A stretch of 63,227 nucleotides of DNA, filler included, from Reticulomyxa filosa (taxonomy: Eukaryota; Protista; Foraminifera): the NCBI GenBank assembly GCA_000512085.1. It is 13 parts of 13 records of this genome, joined end to end, with 100 filler letters (N's around TTAATTAATTAA, not from the genome) between each part and the next. Parts side by side here need not be neighbours in the genome. Positions count along the whole stretch, not along the records: positions 47,338 to 56,454 come from ASPP01009433.1; 12 more parts are not named here. The stretch is one strand, 5' to 3'. A program made the translations under genes and the position numbers. The notes under the pieces are model-generated. The model did no database searches. It saw only the letters and a list, made by a program, of their open reading frames with translations, and was not told the DNA's origin. Of this stretch, positions 47,238-56,700 are shown one piece after another (position 1 is the stretch's first letter; every line of letters starts with the position of its first letter).

Positions 47238-47579
47238 NNNNNNNNNNNNNNNNNNNNNNNNNNNNNNNNNNNNNNNNNNNNTTAATTAATTAANNNNNNN
47301 NNNNNNNNNNNNNNNNNNNNNNNNNNNNNNNNNNNNNAAAAGGATGATCTGGGACGTATTTGGTCCGAACTCGTATACAATCAACCCGATGGGGCCTTGG
47401 AATTAGTGCATCCGCAGTCGCAACCTACTGTTGGTATCTGTCCATGTCTTTTTTTCAATCTCTGTGTCTATGTCTATATCTATCTCTTTTTCATGTTGGA
47501 CAAAGAGGAAAGAAGGGAGAGGTTTTTTCGTTAATTGTTATTAGTAAAAAAAAAAAAAAAAACAACTTGTTTTTGACTT

Positions 47580-47864
47580 TTGGCAATGACAGAGACTGGA
47601 CTAAATAATGAAAAAGGGCAACATGAAATTGAACGATACAAAGAGTGCGTTCGCTATCTCGTCGCCGAAAATCGAGCAATGCAAACGAAAATATCTCAGC
47701 TTGCATCTGACTTAGCAAGTTCTTCGGATGAAATGAAAAAACTTGTTTTGCAGTCCACTGAGGATAGAATAAGAATTGTCGAACATCAACAACTGTTGAT
47801 GGAAGAAAATGAACAATTACGAGAACAATTGGCCAAGTTCGAAAAAAATGTGTCTCAAAAATAA
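47580..47864 (+). CDS. Coiled-coil protein, probable last exon
   Basis: Heptad-rich 94-aa frame preceded by intron-like A/T tracts. Confidence 0.45.
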   Translation: MAMTETGLNNEKGQHEIERYKECVRYLVAENRAMQTKISQLASDLASSSDEMKKLVLQSTEDRIRIVEHQQLLMEENEQLREQLAKFEKNVSQK

Positions 47865-49619
47865 CACTTAATCATTTCACACTTATCAAATAGTTTGTTC
47901 GCCCTGTGATACCTTTTTATTGTTCATTCAATTTTTAAAATGGCTCACAGGCTGCTTTGTTTTTGTTGATCTTGCATGTCTAGAATGTTTTCTTCTGTTT
48001 TTCTTTGAAATAAAATTCAACAACGAACATTTTCGAATACTTCCAATGGTCATACCTTGCAACAATATTTCTTTTTTTTTTTAGTCTTATTTTTCATTTA
48101 TTCATTTATTTATTTTGTCGAGGTTACTTTGTGCGTAAATTCTCTGCATACAATTTTTTTACAATAATTCAATTGCTTGCACTGATGCACTATGTGCCAG
48201 GGCTTTAAGTTTGTTTCGTGATTTAAATAAACTGTAGGAGATTTTTTTAAAAGTAGAAATATTATTTTTAACAACTATTTCTGTTTGCTAAAATCAAATC
48301 ACGTGATGTTAGACATATTTTGCAAATGTCATTGTCGGTTATTTTCCATTGTTTTGCGGCACATGCAACTTGCTGCATTCTCTACTCTCTTTTTGATATT
48401 GTTACGCCTGGTATTGTTTTTCGCTGCCTTGTAGAACATAATAAGTTTTAGCTTTGTAATGGAAGGCTGGGCTTGGCAGATAACGTCATTTCGCACAAAA
48501 TTTATTTTTAAGAACGGACCATGACTTTAACGACTTGCTGTTATTGATGATAAATTAATATAAAAAGAAACTATCAATGAATGTAGCATGCATTAAGTGA
48601 CATCTCATAACTATTCATTACTTCAGCAAAATTATAAGGTAAAAAAAGCAAAATATCTTGGGCGAAAAGAAACAAATTGGCACAAAAAGTTAAAAATATC
48701 GTCCCTTTCATACAAAAAAACTTCAGTAAATCATAACGGCGTCATAATTATTGCATTTGGAAAAATCAAATCATTTCTTCCTTTGAAGTCGTTTTAAAAA
48801 TGGATCAAACTGATATGAAAGTGAAAAAGAAGGTTTTAACATGATCTGGTAACTCCTTTTGACTATTTTATCTGTCCATGCATTGACTTAGCGTGTGAAA
48901 ATAATATGTGCTGTTACAATTAAAAATTAATACAAGCATATATGTGCGTATTCAGAAGAAGTTATCTAGACAGCAATTGCGTAGTGAAACTTATAGATAA
49001 TAAAGAATAACGTTGTTATCTTTTGGCGGAACATATCAACGCGATTATGAAATAAAAGTATTTGAGAAAATGAAAAGATATAATTATCAAAAGATTGCAA
49101 TAAATGGAAACACTTAATGAAAATTTTATTATAACAATTATACATTGAAAGGGTGAAGAAAATTATTGTGGGTAAAATATTACTAATTTCATTGAAATAT
49201 TGAGTTGCTGTATTAAGTCGTTTATTCAAATCATTGGTGTATTTGGTGAAGAGCTTGATAATGAAGATGACGACAAAGTCTTGGAAATATAAACACAAAA
49301 GTGGAAAGATTGACATATAATGAATGAAAATTAGATGAGAAATGGGCGATATAATAAGAACAAAAACTTGCTATTGAAAATATAAACGAAGAATTGAAAG
49401 GAATGAAAGAAAGAATTGAAATCACAAAATTTGAAAGTTGACAAATATATTCAATTATTTTATTGTTTATGAAATGTTATGATTATAGTATCACATTCAA
49501 ATGACTGAAACATTACATGATGTGACAAAGTAAAAAATATATCTTTCACGAAATGGTCAACAAATTGTGCTATTAATATTACATAATAAATTTTAATGTT
49601 TATGCGGCCAGGAAATCTA

Positions 49620-49930
49620 ACAGATATAAGTTGCAATGATTTCTATATTATATTTGGATCAGACGAAACAATTAAAATAAGGAATGCAGCAACAAGCACA
49701 AACGTAAAAGAATTTATTGGCTTTTCTGGTAAAGTATGCGCTGTAAAATTTTTTCCAGAAAACAAACTATGGTGAGTCATTTACAAGATAGCACAATACG
49801 ATAATTGGATGTTAAATTAGGAATAGAAATGCAAAAACTGGACACACCACACAGACTGTTTACGTGGATAGTTCTCTAGATGGAATACAATTGCATCATG
49901 TTCCAATGATGATGCGATTCAATTGTGGAC
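49620..49930 (+). pseudogene. Highly decayed WD40 remnant
   Basis: GSDETIKIRN..KVCAVKFFP and IASCSNDDAIQLW in different frames. Confidence 0.55.
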
Positions 49931-50764
49931 ACCTTTGTGAATGAAGAAGGTGCCAAATGTCATGGAAATAATTTCAAACTAGATAACTAGAAGCAATTAA
50001 AGGTTTTGTTTTGTCTTGTTGATATTATTATTGAAAAAAATTTTATAATTACTTAACGTTGCTCACACAATACAAGTTTAAATATTTTTTTTACTTCGTC
50101 ATTCGTCTTCATACAATACACTCAAAACAGTATGCGAAAATTATTTTGCAAAATAAATTGTTCCCTGTTCAAGAAAAAGGCTTTGTGTAAACAGTTATTT
50201 AAGTGCAAAATGATGACCCAAGTATTCACTTGCACAATAGATCATTTCCATACTTGATCTTATCATTTTTAACCTTCCTTATCAAAAAATCTATTTCCAC
50301 ACGGATTTTGCTCATTGACAAAGATATTAACAAAATCAAACGATAGATGCAAGGCAAAAAATACCTAAACTATTTTATAAAATTGTCAAACGTCATTGAT
50401 GATAACAACAATGGATAATGATTTTACAACATAAATGTTTTGAGGATAAAAATGACTGATCCCCAAACTTTGATTGATTTTTATCGTAGAAATGAAAATG
50501 ATGAACATTTCTATGATCGTTTTCACTTAAATCAATGGAATGCAAATGTGACTGTTACTTGTAGAAGTGTTTTTGAACGCTGTTTTAATCATTTTAAGCA
50601 AAATTCTTTTTGTGATTGGCCGAAAATGTTTATGAAATTTTTTGATTTTTCTTGAACGAAAGCCAAGATTAAAAGTAAAACAAAAAAAAAACAAAACACG
50701 AAAACGTCGATCTTTACTATTAAAAAGAAATAAACTGTATTGGTTGAGATCTAATCATAAATAT

Positions 50765-51895
50765 TCAAGGAGCAATAAGTGAAAGTTGCGCACACAACAT
50801 CATGTGATCACTGGGGTAGATATGACTCGGCAATTTTGAATCAAATTGTTCGACTTCTTCAATGTTCCACACATCCAGTACTCGTTGGACTTGAATTCTA
50901 GGAATCAAATAGGTTTTAGTTTCCTCTTGGAATTCCCCCCAAAAAAGGTAATCCAAATTGCATTTGATAATGCGATCAAGCCAAGCCACATAATGAGTAT
51001 ATTCCAGCTCGACTCCATTACCCCGATACAAATCATGGAATTTCAAGTATTCTTGCAAAAGCAGATAAGGATAAGCCAATGGTTTCACATTTTGTTCGTG
51101 TTTATGCGAAGAGTTGAAATCACCACATAAAAGGATGCAATGATGTTGTGAATATTTTAAGATGGCTTGAATTAGCAAATCGATTTGCTGTACTCTCCAA
51201 TTTTCACGGACATTATCACGTCCGGCCTTCAAGTGTGTTGTCCAAACGTCCAATTCTGTTCCCATTTGGCATTTCAAGCGAACGAACAAGGCAATAGTCG
51301 GACTCTTCTCGTTTAGCACGATGGTTTGGTTGGAGACATGTTCAAATGTTTTGACTTTCCAAAATATGGCGCAGCCATCGCTCATATCGAATTTGGAAAA
51401 GCGTGAAGTGTGTTTACGTGCAAAGACTCCAAAGTATCCAAATGCCTTCAAATGTTTCAGCCAGTAGTCGTCGAATAAGCAGAAATCGACCTCTTGCAAG
51501 CAGATAATGTCGCAATTCTTGTCCACTATTTCGGCGAGCAAGCGAGGAAAGCGGTACTCAAAGTCGAGATATTTCGCGTCGCATTTGAACGTGGTCTGAG
51601 GCGAGCCACCTTTGGACAGCGCGTCAGCCAAGCAGTTGAAAGTACCAATACGAAAAGAAAGACTCTTATTATTATTATTATTGTTATTATTGTTATCTTT
51701 CTTTTGATTATTCTTTGCAATTTCTTCCTCTCCCTCTTCTTCTTCTTCTTTTTTTCCATCCTTTCTCAAACACATTTTTTTTTGCGGATCGCAGTCAATC
51801 CATTTGCGTTGCGGCAATGGGGGTTCAATTGCATTTATAATTGATCTTGCCAATATTATATCTTTATCATTTGTCTTTTCATCGTTATTCTTACT

Positions 51896-51947
<52 letters not shown>

Positions 51948-52353
51948 GTATCATTATTATTATCTCTTTTTTTGTGAGGACTGCTTTTGCATCCAAACAA
52001 GGTATTTGCCAAAAGCGAATGATCATACGACATCAGTGCGTCAATGGAGGCGACGACGGCGGCTTTGATCTGTGGAATACCTTTATGTTCGCGGACGCAC
52101 TTGGCCAGGTTGTCGCTGCTGTCGGCGGGGTCGGCAAAGGGATTGATGACGTAGAGCGCAAAGCGTCGAGGGTTGTCAATCCAGCTTCCGGAGAGGACGT
52201 CCATTCCTTTGCGACAAATGATGGATGCATTTTTGGAGCTGTGATTGCAATGATGGAGCCACTCGTTGATAACCTGCAAGAATCGCAAAAACAAATCAGC
52301 GACGCAAGTGTTGTTGGGAAGGACGATAGCAGGATAGATGCAATCGACAAGCG

Positions 52354-52386
<33 letters not shown>

Positions 52387-53764
52387 GAATATCTTTTTTA
52401 TAAAAGCGAAAGATAACAAAGAGAGCAATGTGAATCCAGCCATAGCCATTGATGGTAGAAGATGTGCTATGGCAAATATTGAAATGCTGCGTCCAAAGTT
52501 TGACAGCAAACAAATAATTGCGAACAAGAGTTGAACAAACAGAAGAAGAAGAAGAAGAAGAAGAAGAGTCATCATTGACACAGCCATATCGCATCCATTG
52601 TCGCAGCTGTTCCGTTTGCGAGCGCAACTTGCGACAATCCAAGCCCACAGTGGCATCCATTGATACTGCAAATTGCCACACAACTGGTTGCTGCTGCTGC
52701 TGCAGCTGCTGTTTGACACATCTCAATTGGATATCAAACGCCAACACCGCCTTTGGCACAGCCGCCTCACTCACCACATTGCGATATCCAAATTGAATCC
52801 TCATCACATGCGTGGCATCATTGTCTTTGTCCTTGTTTTTATTGCGGACACATTTCCAATTAACACTTTTGGCATTTGCATCTTTCACACTTGCATCTTT
52901 CACATTTGCATCTTTCACATTTGCATTTGCATCTTTGTCTTTATGTTTGACCTCCTCCATTTTCAAAAGCTGCTCAAACGGCTTCATTTGTCGCGATTTG
53001 TCAACCAGACGCTGCAGCAACGCGACGCACGTATCCTTATCAAGACGTATCCCTTGCGTGGCATCTCTGATCACGATAGTGACGTCCAGGTCACTGTGAT
53101 GTGTGTCCAATCCATACGTGGACGACCCAAACACATGACAAGTCAGACCATTGCCATTGTTATTATTATTATTATTATTACCATTGTCATCGTTGATCAA
53201 TTCGAGCAATGCTTCAAAGTAGCGACAGCACTGTGCACGTGCGAGCTTCTCCAACTTGCTGCTCTTGAACTCGCTGCATGCTTGTTCGATACTCGCATTC
53301 AAAATCTCGTACACTTTCGTATACCATTGAGCTTTGTTTAGACATATTTCATTCATTAACTCTCTTGCATCCATTTTTGCTGTTATTTCTTCTGTTGTTG
53401 TTGTTGTTTCTTTTCTGCTTTGCTCTTGTGTCAATAACTCCTCTGTCTTCTTACACAGGAAATTATCTGTGCAAATCCCCGAGTTTTTGAACAGGTTGTC
53501 GATACGCTTCTCTCGATCCCATAAGGTCTTGTTTCCATATCGGAAACGCAAAATTCGGTGAAATGGTATGTCGCCTCCATTTTCTATTGGCACAAACTCG
53601 TCAAACTCCATCTCTCGGATTTTCTGGTGTCTACCCTCATATACTATAAACACGTTCTTCGTGCTCAATGGCAAGTCCTTGTCCCATTTCAAACGATTAA
53701 ACACATCCACGCTTGTGCGCAGCTTGCTTTTAGGACCTTTGTTACCTACTGTTATTTGCGACAT
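50765..53764 (-). CDS. MJ1316 domain + non-canonical poly(A)/(U) polymerase-type nucleotidyltransferase + nocturnin/CCR4-type EEP phosphoesterase fusion
   Basis: MJ1316: LRTSVDVFNRLKWD..IVYEGR..DIPFHRI..WDR. NTase: VFGSSTYGL...SDLDV and SMD; VKLW..INGYGW; YVINPF..NLA. EEP: TFNCLA, ICLQEVD, DGCAIFW, THLKAG, CGDFNS, LDYLF, YPSDH. First ATG at 53764. Confidence 0.9.
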
Positions 53765-56700
53765 TGTTGTTTTTTCCCAAACAAAAATGTGCAAAAATTT
53801 TGAAAAAGACGGTTAAGTTATGAGCTTTTTTTTTGTTAACTCCCCCCCCCCGCCTTGTCCCGTTTTCTTCTCCCTGAATTTTCATATACTTTTTGTATAA
53901 ATCAAAAGAAATTGTGTAGATTTTCAATTTTTTTTAAAAAAAGAGTCACAGTCTAAAAGTGTTACATCTTGAGCATGAGTGTATAAAAAAAACACGCTAC
54001 TCCATAAATATACAATGATAAGGTTCCGGAAGTGCAACAATTGATGATTTTTTTTTTTTGAAATAGTTTTTAAAGATTTTTTTATCGGAAAAATTTTACA
54101 AGTAGAAGGGAAAAAAAGGTTCGCACAGTATTCAAAAATCCAAGCAAATTATGAAAATCAAAGAGTTTTGAAACGTGATCCCCAGTTTGATTTACGCGTT
54201 CAGTTTCGACACTGTTGTATCAATCAAAATTTTCTAGCGTGTTCAAGCTGAATTTGTTTTTATTAATTTTTACAACGCACGTACTGATGAAACTCGCTCT
54301 GTCAACAAAATTTCTGTGTGCTGTGAAAAACATTATTCTTTTTTGAAATAGAGCAACTGGGATGAAGTTTACTTCCGATCACTCAGCCTACCTAATTCTG
54401 ATAAGAAACGAATATCCCACGCGTTTGATTTGTTTTATATTCAAATATTTTGCTAATATTTTCACAAAGGTGAAATAACATATAATTTAGATTTTTTAAT
54501 TTGTTTCATCTCCATAACGCAACGTCTTTCTTGTTGCTAAAAGTAAGAACAAAAAAAAACTAAAAATTCAAAAAAGCCCCTTGTCATAATTTTCTCCATC
54601 AAGACATGAATACAACCAAATCCAAAAAAAAAATATTTGGAGAGGATAAACTGTCCTCAAAGTATAAAATCATAACAACAGAGAACCAGTATTGGAAAGC
54701 ATACTTGATACAATCAGCGAACAAGCTTTACGCAAGTATTGTTTGTGATATTGTACAAAGGCAGGCCGATTTACGCTCGTGGGAAAAGAGTTGCGAACGA
54801 GGAGAAACACAAACGGGGACTAATCGAAGCGTACAGTGACAATTCTAGCAAAAATCATCAGAATTTGATGGTAGTACTGTGCCGCTGGCACTTACAGCAG
54901 AGTGCTTGGGGTCTTCTCCCCTACTCGAAACTAATAGTCTGTTCGAATAAGTGGCCGAATGTATCACAACACGGCGATGCGCAGTAAAACGTTGTCCAAA
55001 CTGCAAGGCTGTGTTGACATGATTTTGCATTCTCAAAGCATGCATTTAATCCTCTGTCTAAAGACAGCACCGCATACAAAAAACTGGCTCGCGATCAATC
55101 CAGCATGCCAGCCTACACGTTGATAAATTTCACGGTTCTAAAAGAAAAAATTTGATTTACTAAAAAAAATAGATATCGGATACGAAGCATTTATTACATT
55201 ATAGCAAAATTTCCATAGTGCTTTGGTCTCACCAAATATTTCGAACAAAATTTTTTCATTTCTGTTTGATGAGGTTTTTTGAAATGAGGATTGCTTTGTC
55301 TTTTTTTCAAAAATTAATGAAAAAGTAATGATAAATTAATTATGTTGAAAAATATTTTTTAATTTAAAAAATAAATTTTGTTGTTTTGGTTGTGTTACTG
55401 CGATGTTCGATTCTCCAAGGACCACAATGTAGACTAAGCTTCTTTGTAATATTTGCACAATATTTTGTTTTAATCTTTCATTTCTAGTGCAAAACCTAAC
55501 TTCTGCAATAAATTTTATAATCCAGTATGTAAAACGGCAAAATAGATTAAAAAAAATCTTTGTAGTAACGATGTGACTACGATGAAAATACAAATATAAT
55601 AAAACATAAACAGACATAAAATTCATAGACACAACTGTGCCGCCGGAAAAAGTGAATTCTATTTTTTCAATTCTAGTGCATGTCAAAAATAAAATAATAC
55701 ATTTGCTACTATCTAATCTTATTTACCGAAACAGCTCGATAAACAATATCACACTATTCACTATCTTCATAATACTAATAAACTTAACGTTTTTCACAAA
55801 AAAACATAAAAATCTAACAAATATTTAAACTGTTGATTGCAGCAATAAATTAAAGTCATCATGCTACTTCATAATTAAAAAAAAATTTGTAAGGCATAGA
55901 AACATAGGTTAAAACTCCACCGTTTGACAAAAGACCGATAAACATATTTTCTGCAGAAAAATACAAAGAAAATTTTGAATAAAGATTTCGTTTGAGTTTG
56001 CGAAAGTTTTAGTGGACGCAAGAATGTATGAAGAGGTAATGATTGTACAAAGATTTAAAGATATACAAACGTTCGTCAGTCAAAATCTTTGGCTAAATTC
56101 AAAAGAAATTTTCCAAAATATGATTTGGATCAAATTGTTATGACATTTGTTATGATAAATGGGACGAAATTAAAAAACTTGGTATTGTAATTGATGATGA
56201 AGTGAAATTAAATGAATTTATGATAATGTTAATGATGAAAACAAAATGATAGTGATTGTGCAAGCGATAAATCGCAAACTGGGAACTCACAAAGAATTTC
56301 AACTTGTTTAAAAAGTCCATTCAAAGATTAAATAAAAAACGGAAATTATGAGAAGTAAAAGAAAAAACATTGGTAGTATCAACATTAAATACAATACATT
56401 AAGACAAAAGAGCAAGAGGAATAAGTACAGTATGTTGCAAAGAAAACTGAACGCNNNNNNNNNNNNNNNNNNNNNNNNNNNNNNNNNNNNNNNNNNNNTT
56501 AATTAATTAANNNNNNNNNNNNNNNNNNNNNNNNNNNNNNNNNNNNNNNNNNNNCATAAAGTCTCAGTATAATACATTTGTCAAAGAAGTAAAAGAATTA
56601 AAAGTTTATGTCCATAGTTCTGTTTTTGAAAATGTAACACAATATTTTCAAAAAAAAATAGGAAATACAATTATAATCTAAATTCAAGTTTTTGTTTAAT

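Follow-up and report, generated by a model that had tools for sequence, protein, structure and literature searches.

A predicted MJ1316, nucleotidyltransferase and nocturnin-sister EEP chain in the foraminiferan Reticulomyxa filosa, a candidate enzyme for healing and tailing RNA 3' ends

Addition of a tail to an RNA needs a free 3'-OH. ANGEL2 clears 3' phosphates and thereby allows MTPAP to polyadenylate (PMC9525292), and ELAC1 followed by TRNT1 is a second heal-then-tail case (discussed in PMC7897491). The MJ1316 domain has been described as recognising 2',3'-cyclic ends, and in eukaryotes is fused to diverse RNA-repair domains (PMC6514570, through which, and as far as it relates them, we cite the MJ1316 RNA-repair fusions of Burroughs and Aravind, 2016). 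Here we describe a single-exon open reading frame (ORF) of Reticulomyxa filosa (assembly GCA_000512085.1) in which MJ1316 is followed by a TENT-type nucleotidyltransferase (NTase) and a nocturnin-sister EEP domain. The gene occupies 50765..53764, on the minus strand, of a 63,227-nucleotide stretch of 13 joined records (the window), in the part taken from ASPP01009433.1. With moderate confidence, we suggest that it encodes a one-chain RNA 3'-end heal-and-tail enzyme that would bind cleaved ends, remove the terminal 2' or 3' phosphate, and tail the freed 3'-OH.

One continuous minus-strand frame runs from an ATG at 53764 to a TGA at 50765 and translates into 999 amino acids, in agreement with an earlier note on this DNA that had reported an uninterrupted ORF of about 1000 codons. 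The flanks contain short or broken frames only; at their stop frequency an ORF of this length has a chance probability of about 1e-27, and the remaining two minus-strand frames over the same span hold 41 and 102 stops. GC content by codon position is alike across the MJ1316, NTase and EEP parts. The ESM Atlas contains a letter-for-letter identical protein, which shows only that the gene was called here; an Rfam scan gave no match, and the repeats found are low-complexity runs only. Domain-wise hidden Markov model searches, which the note had proposed, recovered MJ1316 (E 6.6e-12), an MTPAP-like palm (1e-5) and an EEP domain (6.3e-11) from Pfam. The motifs lie where they had been placed (FGSS at 53131, SDLD at 53095, SMD with D370 at 52657-52655, THLKA at 51238 and PSDH at 50815), and the claim of three domains with intact active sites holds for the NTase triad and for all EEP catalytic residues.

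The MJ1316 domain spans residues 12-89 (53498..53731, minus strand), close to the 53490-53725 first proposed. Its Pfam match (PF04457, residues 16-84) scores 46.4 bits against a cut-off of 26.3, and the alignment retains the conserved R24, D28, G64, H69, W82-D83-R84, R87 and D89. Related MJ1316 domains from the same search are fused to Tpt1 (an RNA 2'-phosphotransferase), 2H, NUDIX, a DEDD exonuclease with CCCH, and poly(A) polymerase (PAP). Individual examples are P0068, in which MJ1316 is joined to a Tpt1/KptA RNA 2'-phosphotransferase domain; P0058, P0089, P0101 and P0137, with NUDIX; and P0061, in which MJ1316 sits between DEDD exonuclease domains and a CCCH finger is also present.

The NTase consists of a catalytic palm lobe (residues 155-375, 52640..53302, minus strand), assigned by MTPAP-like_central, the Atlas structure and fold matches, and a C-terminal, PAP-associated lobe (residues 380-580, 52025..52627), which includes K422. 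The palm carries the FGSS...SDLD signature with catalytic D225 and D227 (53084..53131) and the third catalytic aspartate, D370, in SMD (52655..52657). Its Pfam match covers residues 155-269, and the NTase part alone scores 27.6 bits against a cut-off of 27. F212-G-S, D225, D227 and D370 are kept in every homologue that covers them, with FGSS..SDID in the relatives P0004/P0154, FGS..SDID in contig L008, and SMD or QMD around the third aspartate. Further invariants of the family are TINGYGW.HIA, which matches TLSSYGY of Cid1, and a PF...NL[AT]KCVR loop; by motif mapping the latter corresponds to the nucleotide-recognition loop, here V-I-N-P-F...D551-N-L-A-K-C-V-R (52091..52150). A low-complexity insertion of DANVK-type 15-nt repeats interrupts the palm (residues 270-320, 52805..52957), and P0004 carries one of similar size at the same site. 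Since the insertion of P0004 is in frame, a hidden intron in the repeat stretch is ruled out.

Fold and profile comparisons agree on the class of this NTase. When the family profile was compared with the PDB, the relevant matches were confined to TUT7, Cid1, CutA and URT1, all weak (E 0.05-0.8); the Atlas model aligns with HESO1/MTPAP/TUT clusters at a TM-score of about 0.6; and a low-confidence model of the NTase ranked TUT1, TUT4, TUT7, GLD-2 and Cid1 first (Z 8.6-10.6), with canonical PAP at 7.5-7.6. All top fold matches are TUT/GLD-2/mtPAP/Cid1, and OAS2, OAS1 and cGLR chains appear at Z 6-8.5 with TENT chains among or above them. Matches to PAP alpha, PAP gamma, Pap1 or PAP_central were sought in the NTase and none was found, whereas P0055 has them. 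From these models and profiles we classify the NTase as a divergent TENT with a Cid1 fold. The nucleotide contacts of Cid1 (PMC3479196) were mapped by motif and not by structural superposition; on this mapping F88/S90 and the triad are retained, K422 and Y441 correspond to K193 and Y212, there is no counterpart of E333, and the residue at the H336 position, before the conserved asparagine, is Asp or Gly in the family. Because of the latter, we assign the protein neither to the His-type TUTases nor to the Asn-type PAPs, and which nucleotide it would add is not predictable from sequence. Of the earlier label "TUTase/ncPAP-type", the non-canonical PAP (ncPAP)/TENT fold is therefore borne out and the TUTase part is not, the position of the UTP-selecting His being Asp or Gly.

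The EEP domain (residues 701-999, 50768..51664, minus strand; Pfam match at residues 708-987) follows a linker rich in Asn, Glu and Lys (residues 596-700, 51665..51979) with a conserved P-x-R-x-W just ahead of the domain. Its catalytic residues N710, E758, H844, D882, N884, D938, D986 and H987 are all present and invariant. Nocturnin is the nearest solved relative (E 1.5e-17), and EEP profiles rank nocturnin (3.4e-36) ahead of CCR4/PDE12 (2e-25 or weaker) and ANGEL2 (2e-19). We built trees of 147 and 51 EEP domains, with rows from searches seeded with this protein and midpoint rooting, so that the root is not fixed. They place the domain in a 23-member clade (support 99; 99/94) outside the clade of named nocturnins (99/85), apart from CCR4/PDE12 and ANGEL and on the nocturnin side of the tree (79/99). 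The closest named paralogue, a sequence of the foraminiferan Bolivina argentea, joins this protein with support of 100/98. We call this the WxGW clade, after the second of its two marks, THLKAG and [WY]-x-[GA]-[WF].

The pocket separates this clade from nocturnin at defined positions. In nocturnin, the adenine of NADPH is held between R290 and R367, and where nocturnin has Ala the deadenylases carry Trp (10.1101/534560); our alignment maps this Ala to A289. Using nocturnin numbering from the 6mal alignment (offset 119), with K288 and R290 in THLKAR and K365 and R367 in TWKIR, nocturnin K219, K288 and A289 are kept as K784, K846 and A847. In THLKAG (51221..51238), G848 replaces R290, and glycine occupies this position in 23 of 23 clade members; in the clade signature YTHYVAWLDR (50972..51001), V926 and W928 replace K365 and R367, and across the clade the former position is a small residue and the latter is aromatic in 20 of the 21 members covering it. 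The deadenylase Trp (as in THIHW or THLYW) is replaced by Ala in 22 of the 23 members and by Cys in the other, a Pfam scan of the protein found no leucine-rich repeat (LRR) domain, and the THLL-Y/F-N-P motif of ANGEL is absent, with THLKAG in its place and the domain in a separate clade. Because it belongs to a separate clade (99/94) and lacks the NADPH-binding R290 and R367, the EEP is, by tree and pocket residues, nocturnin-like but not a nocturnin. The proposal that it lay closest to nocturnin thus stands as regards the nearest solved relative and the side of the tree, and fails as regards membership of the named-nocturnin clade.

Several WxGW members carry RNA-binding domains: KH, CCCH and RRM in P0019 and P0034, and CCCH in P0044 (from the diplonemid Sulcionema specki) and P0007; others stand alone. 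These fusions are the best evidence pointing to RNA as the substrate on which the clade would act. A limited literature search found no published description of the clade, which is a candidate for an undescribed CCR4-family branch spread over several protist groups. Sixteen WxGW EEPs fall outside the foraminiferan clade (P0008, P0010, P0012, P0017-19, P0022, P0024, P0034-35, P0037, P0043-44, P0071, P0138 and P0152), and L009:24-1484 is a further such member.

Homologues of the whole architecture were found in other lineages. An exhaustive representative search identified P0004/P0154, P0005 and P0009 as relatives of the NTase region, whose contigs were compared by tblastn, and spliced homologues (L001, L002, L008) were compared exon by exon. 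Word-index protein searches missed true homologues, the full-length query returning CCR4-type EEPs only and the NTase alignment nothing; viral contigs and JGI metagenome contigs scanned with NTase or EEP patterns gave no match. In L001 and L002, from marine metagenomes and 97% identical to each other, MJ1316 lies over two short upstream exons, followed by a frame with the MJ1316 tail, the NTase and most of the EEP, and then by a last EEP exon. In L003 (Tara), MJ1316 is followed by an assembly gap and then by the C-terminal part of the NTase and the EEP in a single frame. L008 has MJ1316 and then FGS..SDID at the contig end; in L006 a single frame, broken by one frameshift within the EEP, runs through the NTase C-lobe and the EEP; and L005 has only the C-terminal part of the NTase. 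The architecture search that had been proposed thus finds the order MJ1316, NTase, EEP again in L001/L002 and, with the gap, in L003. Identity between lineages over NTase and EEP is 26-54%, and the intron pattern varies between them.

Comparison of L001 with L002 gives a ratio of non-synonymous to synonymous change (pN/pS) of 0.15 in the NTase (26.5 synonymous and 14.5 non-synonymous changes) and 0.04 in the EEP exon part, which shows this pair, on the evidence of its substitutions, to be under purifying selection. A chimeric assembly is very unlikely, because the same domain order occurs in other lineages, L006 and L008 each link two domains, and the close pair is under purifying selection. 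The architecture is, on these alignments, a small family and not a one-off, shared by several species that are probably foraminiferan. The MJ1316 parts of L001 (928-986) and L008 (about 655-780) have an intron at apparently the same site, after IVYK or ISYQ, which has no intron in the window ORF or in L003; in L008 the intron is in frame and the gene caller read through it. Run SRR24907496 holds two NTase-less paralogues of the foraminiferan-clade EEP, a CCCH-finger and EEP protein (L004:845-2290) and a Bolivina-type stand-alone EEP (L007:1946-3214); that one sample has both suggests that genes were duplicated and domains shuffled within the lineage.

In the mechanism we favour, MJ1316 would, following the role proposed for the domain, dock on a 3' end left by a metal-independent nuclease, with a 2',3'-cyclic or monoester phosphate. 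The nocturnin-sister EEP would then use Mg2+ to take off the terminal phosphate, a 2'- or 3'-monoester being the most plausible, in a pocket where nocturnin's lysines and small Ala are retained and an aromatic residue stands in place of the arginine clamp; by analogy, nocturnin-like chemistry favours action on a monoester. Finally, the TENT-fold NTase would add untemplated nucleotides to the freed 3'-OH, and the fragment would be marked for decay or readied for repair or maturation. Domains, catalytic residues, conservation, selection and RNA-binding partners are the evidence from which we infer a substrate, an order of steps and an outcome. The heal-then-tail logic had been put forward in the earlier note; the evidence in the sequence supports it to a moderate degree, and ANGEL2 followed by MTPAP is a precedent in separate proteins. 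More tentatively, we propose that the WxGW clade as a whole is a nocturnin sister that dephosphorylates RNA ends (2'-P or 3'-P) and not NADP(H), and that its fusion with MJ1316 and a divergent TENT took place in foraminifera, independently of the fusions of MJ1316, EEP, 2H and PAP; this broader proposal is possible and still doubtful.

Several points weigh against the heal-and-tail proposal. Read support comes from one run with a single 223-bp contig in the EEP (51324-51546) bearing three differences; one of these, G>A at 51496 (run X1, depth 2.5), would turn Q757 (CAA) into a stop and is probably an error, at a depth where the tool warns of errors. Among the available read matches of this genome none spans a domain junction. 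The ligand of MJ1316 is a proposed one, and no solved structure related to the domain was found; the EEP phosphatase and NTase tailing activities are likewise predictions from sequence and fold. The AlphaFold single-sequence model (predicted local distance difference test, pLDDT, 35) was unusable, and the NTase model (pLDDT 42) was used for fold class only. Some Cid1 contacts are changed by motif mapping (K197 to Q, S211 to G, N171 to R or Q), and an NTase with these changes may be slow or atypical. Having neither an ANGEL motif nor a 2H domain, the protein offers no evident means of opening a cyclic phosphate. Lastly, EEP-clade members without the NTase occur (L007 and L009 alone, L004 with a CCCH finger), and the fusion is therefore not required for EEP function.

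These points bear on the rival explanations to different degrees. That the gene is an artefact, either an assembly chimera or a gene decaying in this genome, has an extremely small chance of being right: broken frames are abundant in this genome piece, the junctions are unspanned and one low-depth contig has a possible stop, but independent assemblies have the identical domain order, and the 999-codon frame is open with every catalytic residue intact and similar GC by codon position in its three domains. A joined writer and eraser, the alternative already raised in the earlier note, would have the EEP trim tails or CCA ends as a 3'-5' exonuclease, in the manner of CNOT6L, PDE12 or trypanosome LCCR4, and the NTase rebuild them, the pair setting tail length on MJ1316-bound RNAs. 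LRR-less CCR4-family EEPs can trim RNA 3' ends (LCCR4, PMC7897491), RNA-binding fusions occur within the clade, and the aromatic W928 could stack a base. This alternative is weakened by the absence of the deadenylase Trp across the clade, by the position of the clade away from CCR4/PDE12/ANGEL, and by the observation that Nocturnin and Curled leave poly(A) uncleaved (10.1101/534560); we consider it unlikely.

Quite unlikely, too, is a looser association, in which the EEP would be a metabolite phosphatase (for NADP(H) or another 2'-phospho nucleotide) or the NTase a non-catalytic RNA-binding scaffold. Nocturnin as nearest solved relative, the retained K219, K288 and A289, the stand-alone paralogues and the missing triphosphate contacts of the NTase would fit it. 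The residues that sandwich the NADPH adenine are, however, Gly and Trp, Phe or Tyr in nearly the whole clade, and Chlamydomonas PMR1, with the milder change of only R290 to K and S369 to K, is already 50-fold weaker on NADP(H) (PMC10760936); a scaffold is at odds with a triad kept in every covering homologue and with purifying selection on the domain. Maker and degrader fusions are common in conflict systems, and OAS2, OAS1 and cGLR are among the structural matches, so that one can envisage a nucleotide-signal module: broken RNA would trigger the NTase to synthesise an oligo- or cyclic nucleotide, in the way of OAS or cGLR, and the EEP would degrade it, as PDE12 does. We regard this as distinctly improbable, given that TUT/GLD-2/Cid1 rank structurally among or above OAS/cGLR, that TENTs are the only relevant sequence-profile matches, that the TINGYGW and PF...NLAK motifs are TENT-type, and that the EEP is not in the PDE12 group.

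The surroundings of the gene in the window hold mostly fragments. A 71-aa plus-strand frame (50420-50655), with no Pfam match, points towards the 3' end of the ORF from a distance of about 110 bp. At 48966-49990 (plus strand) lies a decayed coiled-coil and WD40-like gene with many stops and frameshifts, in which remnants such as GSDETIKIRN and NTIASCSNDDAIQLW were read by eye. At 54600-55050 (plus strand) a broken frame has Cys/His motifs (C..HL...C, C..C, KRCPNCKA) resembling a RING-type zinc finger, its pieces without a Pfam match, and at 47338-47864 (plus strand) the 3' end of an intron-containing gene is cut at the piece edge, its last exon encoding a 94-aa coiled-coil with weak coiled-coil Pfam matches only.

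If the heal-and-tail proposal is right, one polypeptide does the work of ANGEL2 and MTPAP, or of ELAC1 and TRNT1, which are separate elsewhere. Whether nocturnin-type enzymes act on RNA or on NADP(H) only has long been argued. Bearing on this debate is a sister clade in which precisely the arginines that clamp NADPH are exchanged and whose members are fused repeatedly to domains that bind RNA. The clade also forms a new CCR4-family branch open to testing; the compact MJ1316 found here is, in addition, suited to testing the domain's proposed ligand role. A chain of MJ1316, EEP and PAP is already known, and what is new here is a different set of parts, plus a possibly undescribed nocturnin-sister subfamily, the latter being the more valuable lead. 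A limited literature search found no description of the present architecture, and an earlier mention may exist.

Compared with known systems, the protein resembles each in part. With Nocturnin and Curled, NADP(H) 2'-phosphatases, the EEP shares THLKA, the K219/K288/A289 set, a C-terminal LPS..YPSDH and all catalytic residues; it differs in its separate clade, in the glycine, small and aromatic residues at R290, K365 and R367, and in the fusion of WxGW-clade EEPs to RNA-binding or RNA-tailing domains. With the CCR4/CNOT6/PDE12 deadenylases it shares the EEP fold with its N, E, H, D-x-N, D and D-H residues and a CCR4-group sequence, but it has Ala847, no LRR and a separate clade. The NTase has the fold, triad, K193 and Y212 equivalents and PF...N loop of the TENT family (Cid1, TUT4/7, TUT1, GLD-2, HESO1, MTPAP), yet is only 10-20% identical in structural alignments, has a long palm insertion, lacks E333 and the His or Asn at the H336 position, and has K197 and S211 replaced, so that its subfamily is not assignable. 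As in mitochondrial ANGEL2 and MTPAP, a CCR4-family EEP that clears a 3'-terminal phosphate would be paired with a non-canonical PAP that tails; those are two proteins, the present EEP is not an ANGEL (no L-Y/F-N-P motif, another clade), and its MJ1316, beginning at about residue 12, would leave no room for a mitochondrial presequence.

Also among the closest systems are proteins with MJ1316, EEP, 2H and a canonical PAP, of which we found P0055/P0056. Like the present protein, each is a single chain that unites MJ1316 with an EEP phosphoesterase and a Pol-beta NTase, and the same logic of healing and tailing is implied, but the order of domains is another one; the earlier note had mentioned fungal MJ1316 fusions with canonical PAP and 2H domains. 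Their NTase matches canonical PAP (PAP gamma, 5e-14) whereas ours has the TENT/Cid1 fold; they have a 2H domain, which the present protein lacks; and their EEP belongs to another subfamily, because it scores 14-25 bits on the present EEP profile against 93-186 for the CCR4 group. On the simplest reading of these comparisons, the R. filosa protein looks to have been assembled independently of them, by convergence, which suggests that the pairing of an end sensor, a phosphatase and a tail writer arose twice from different parts.

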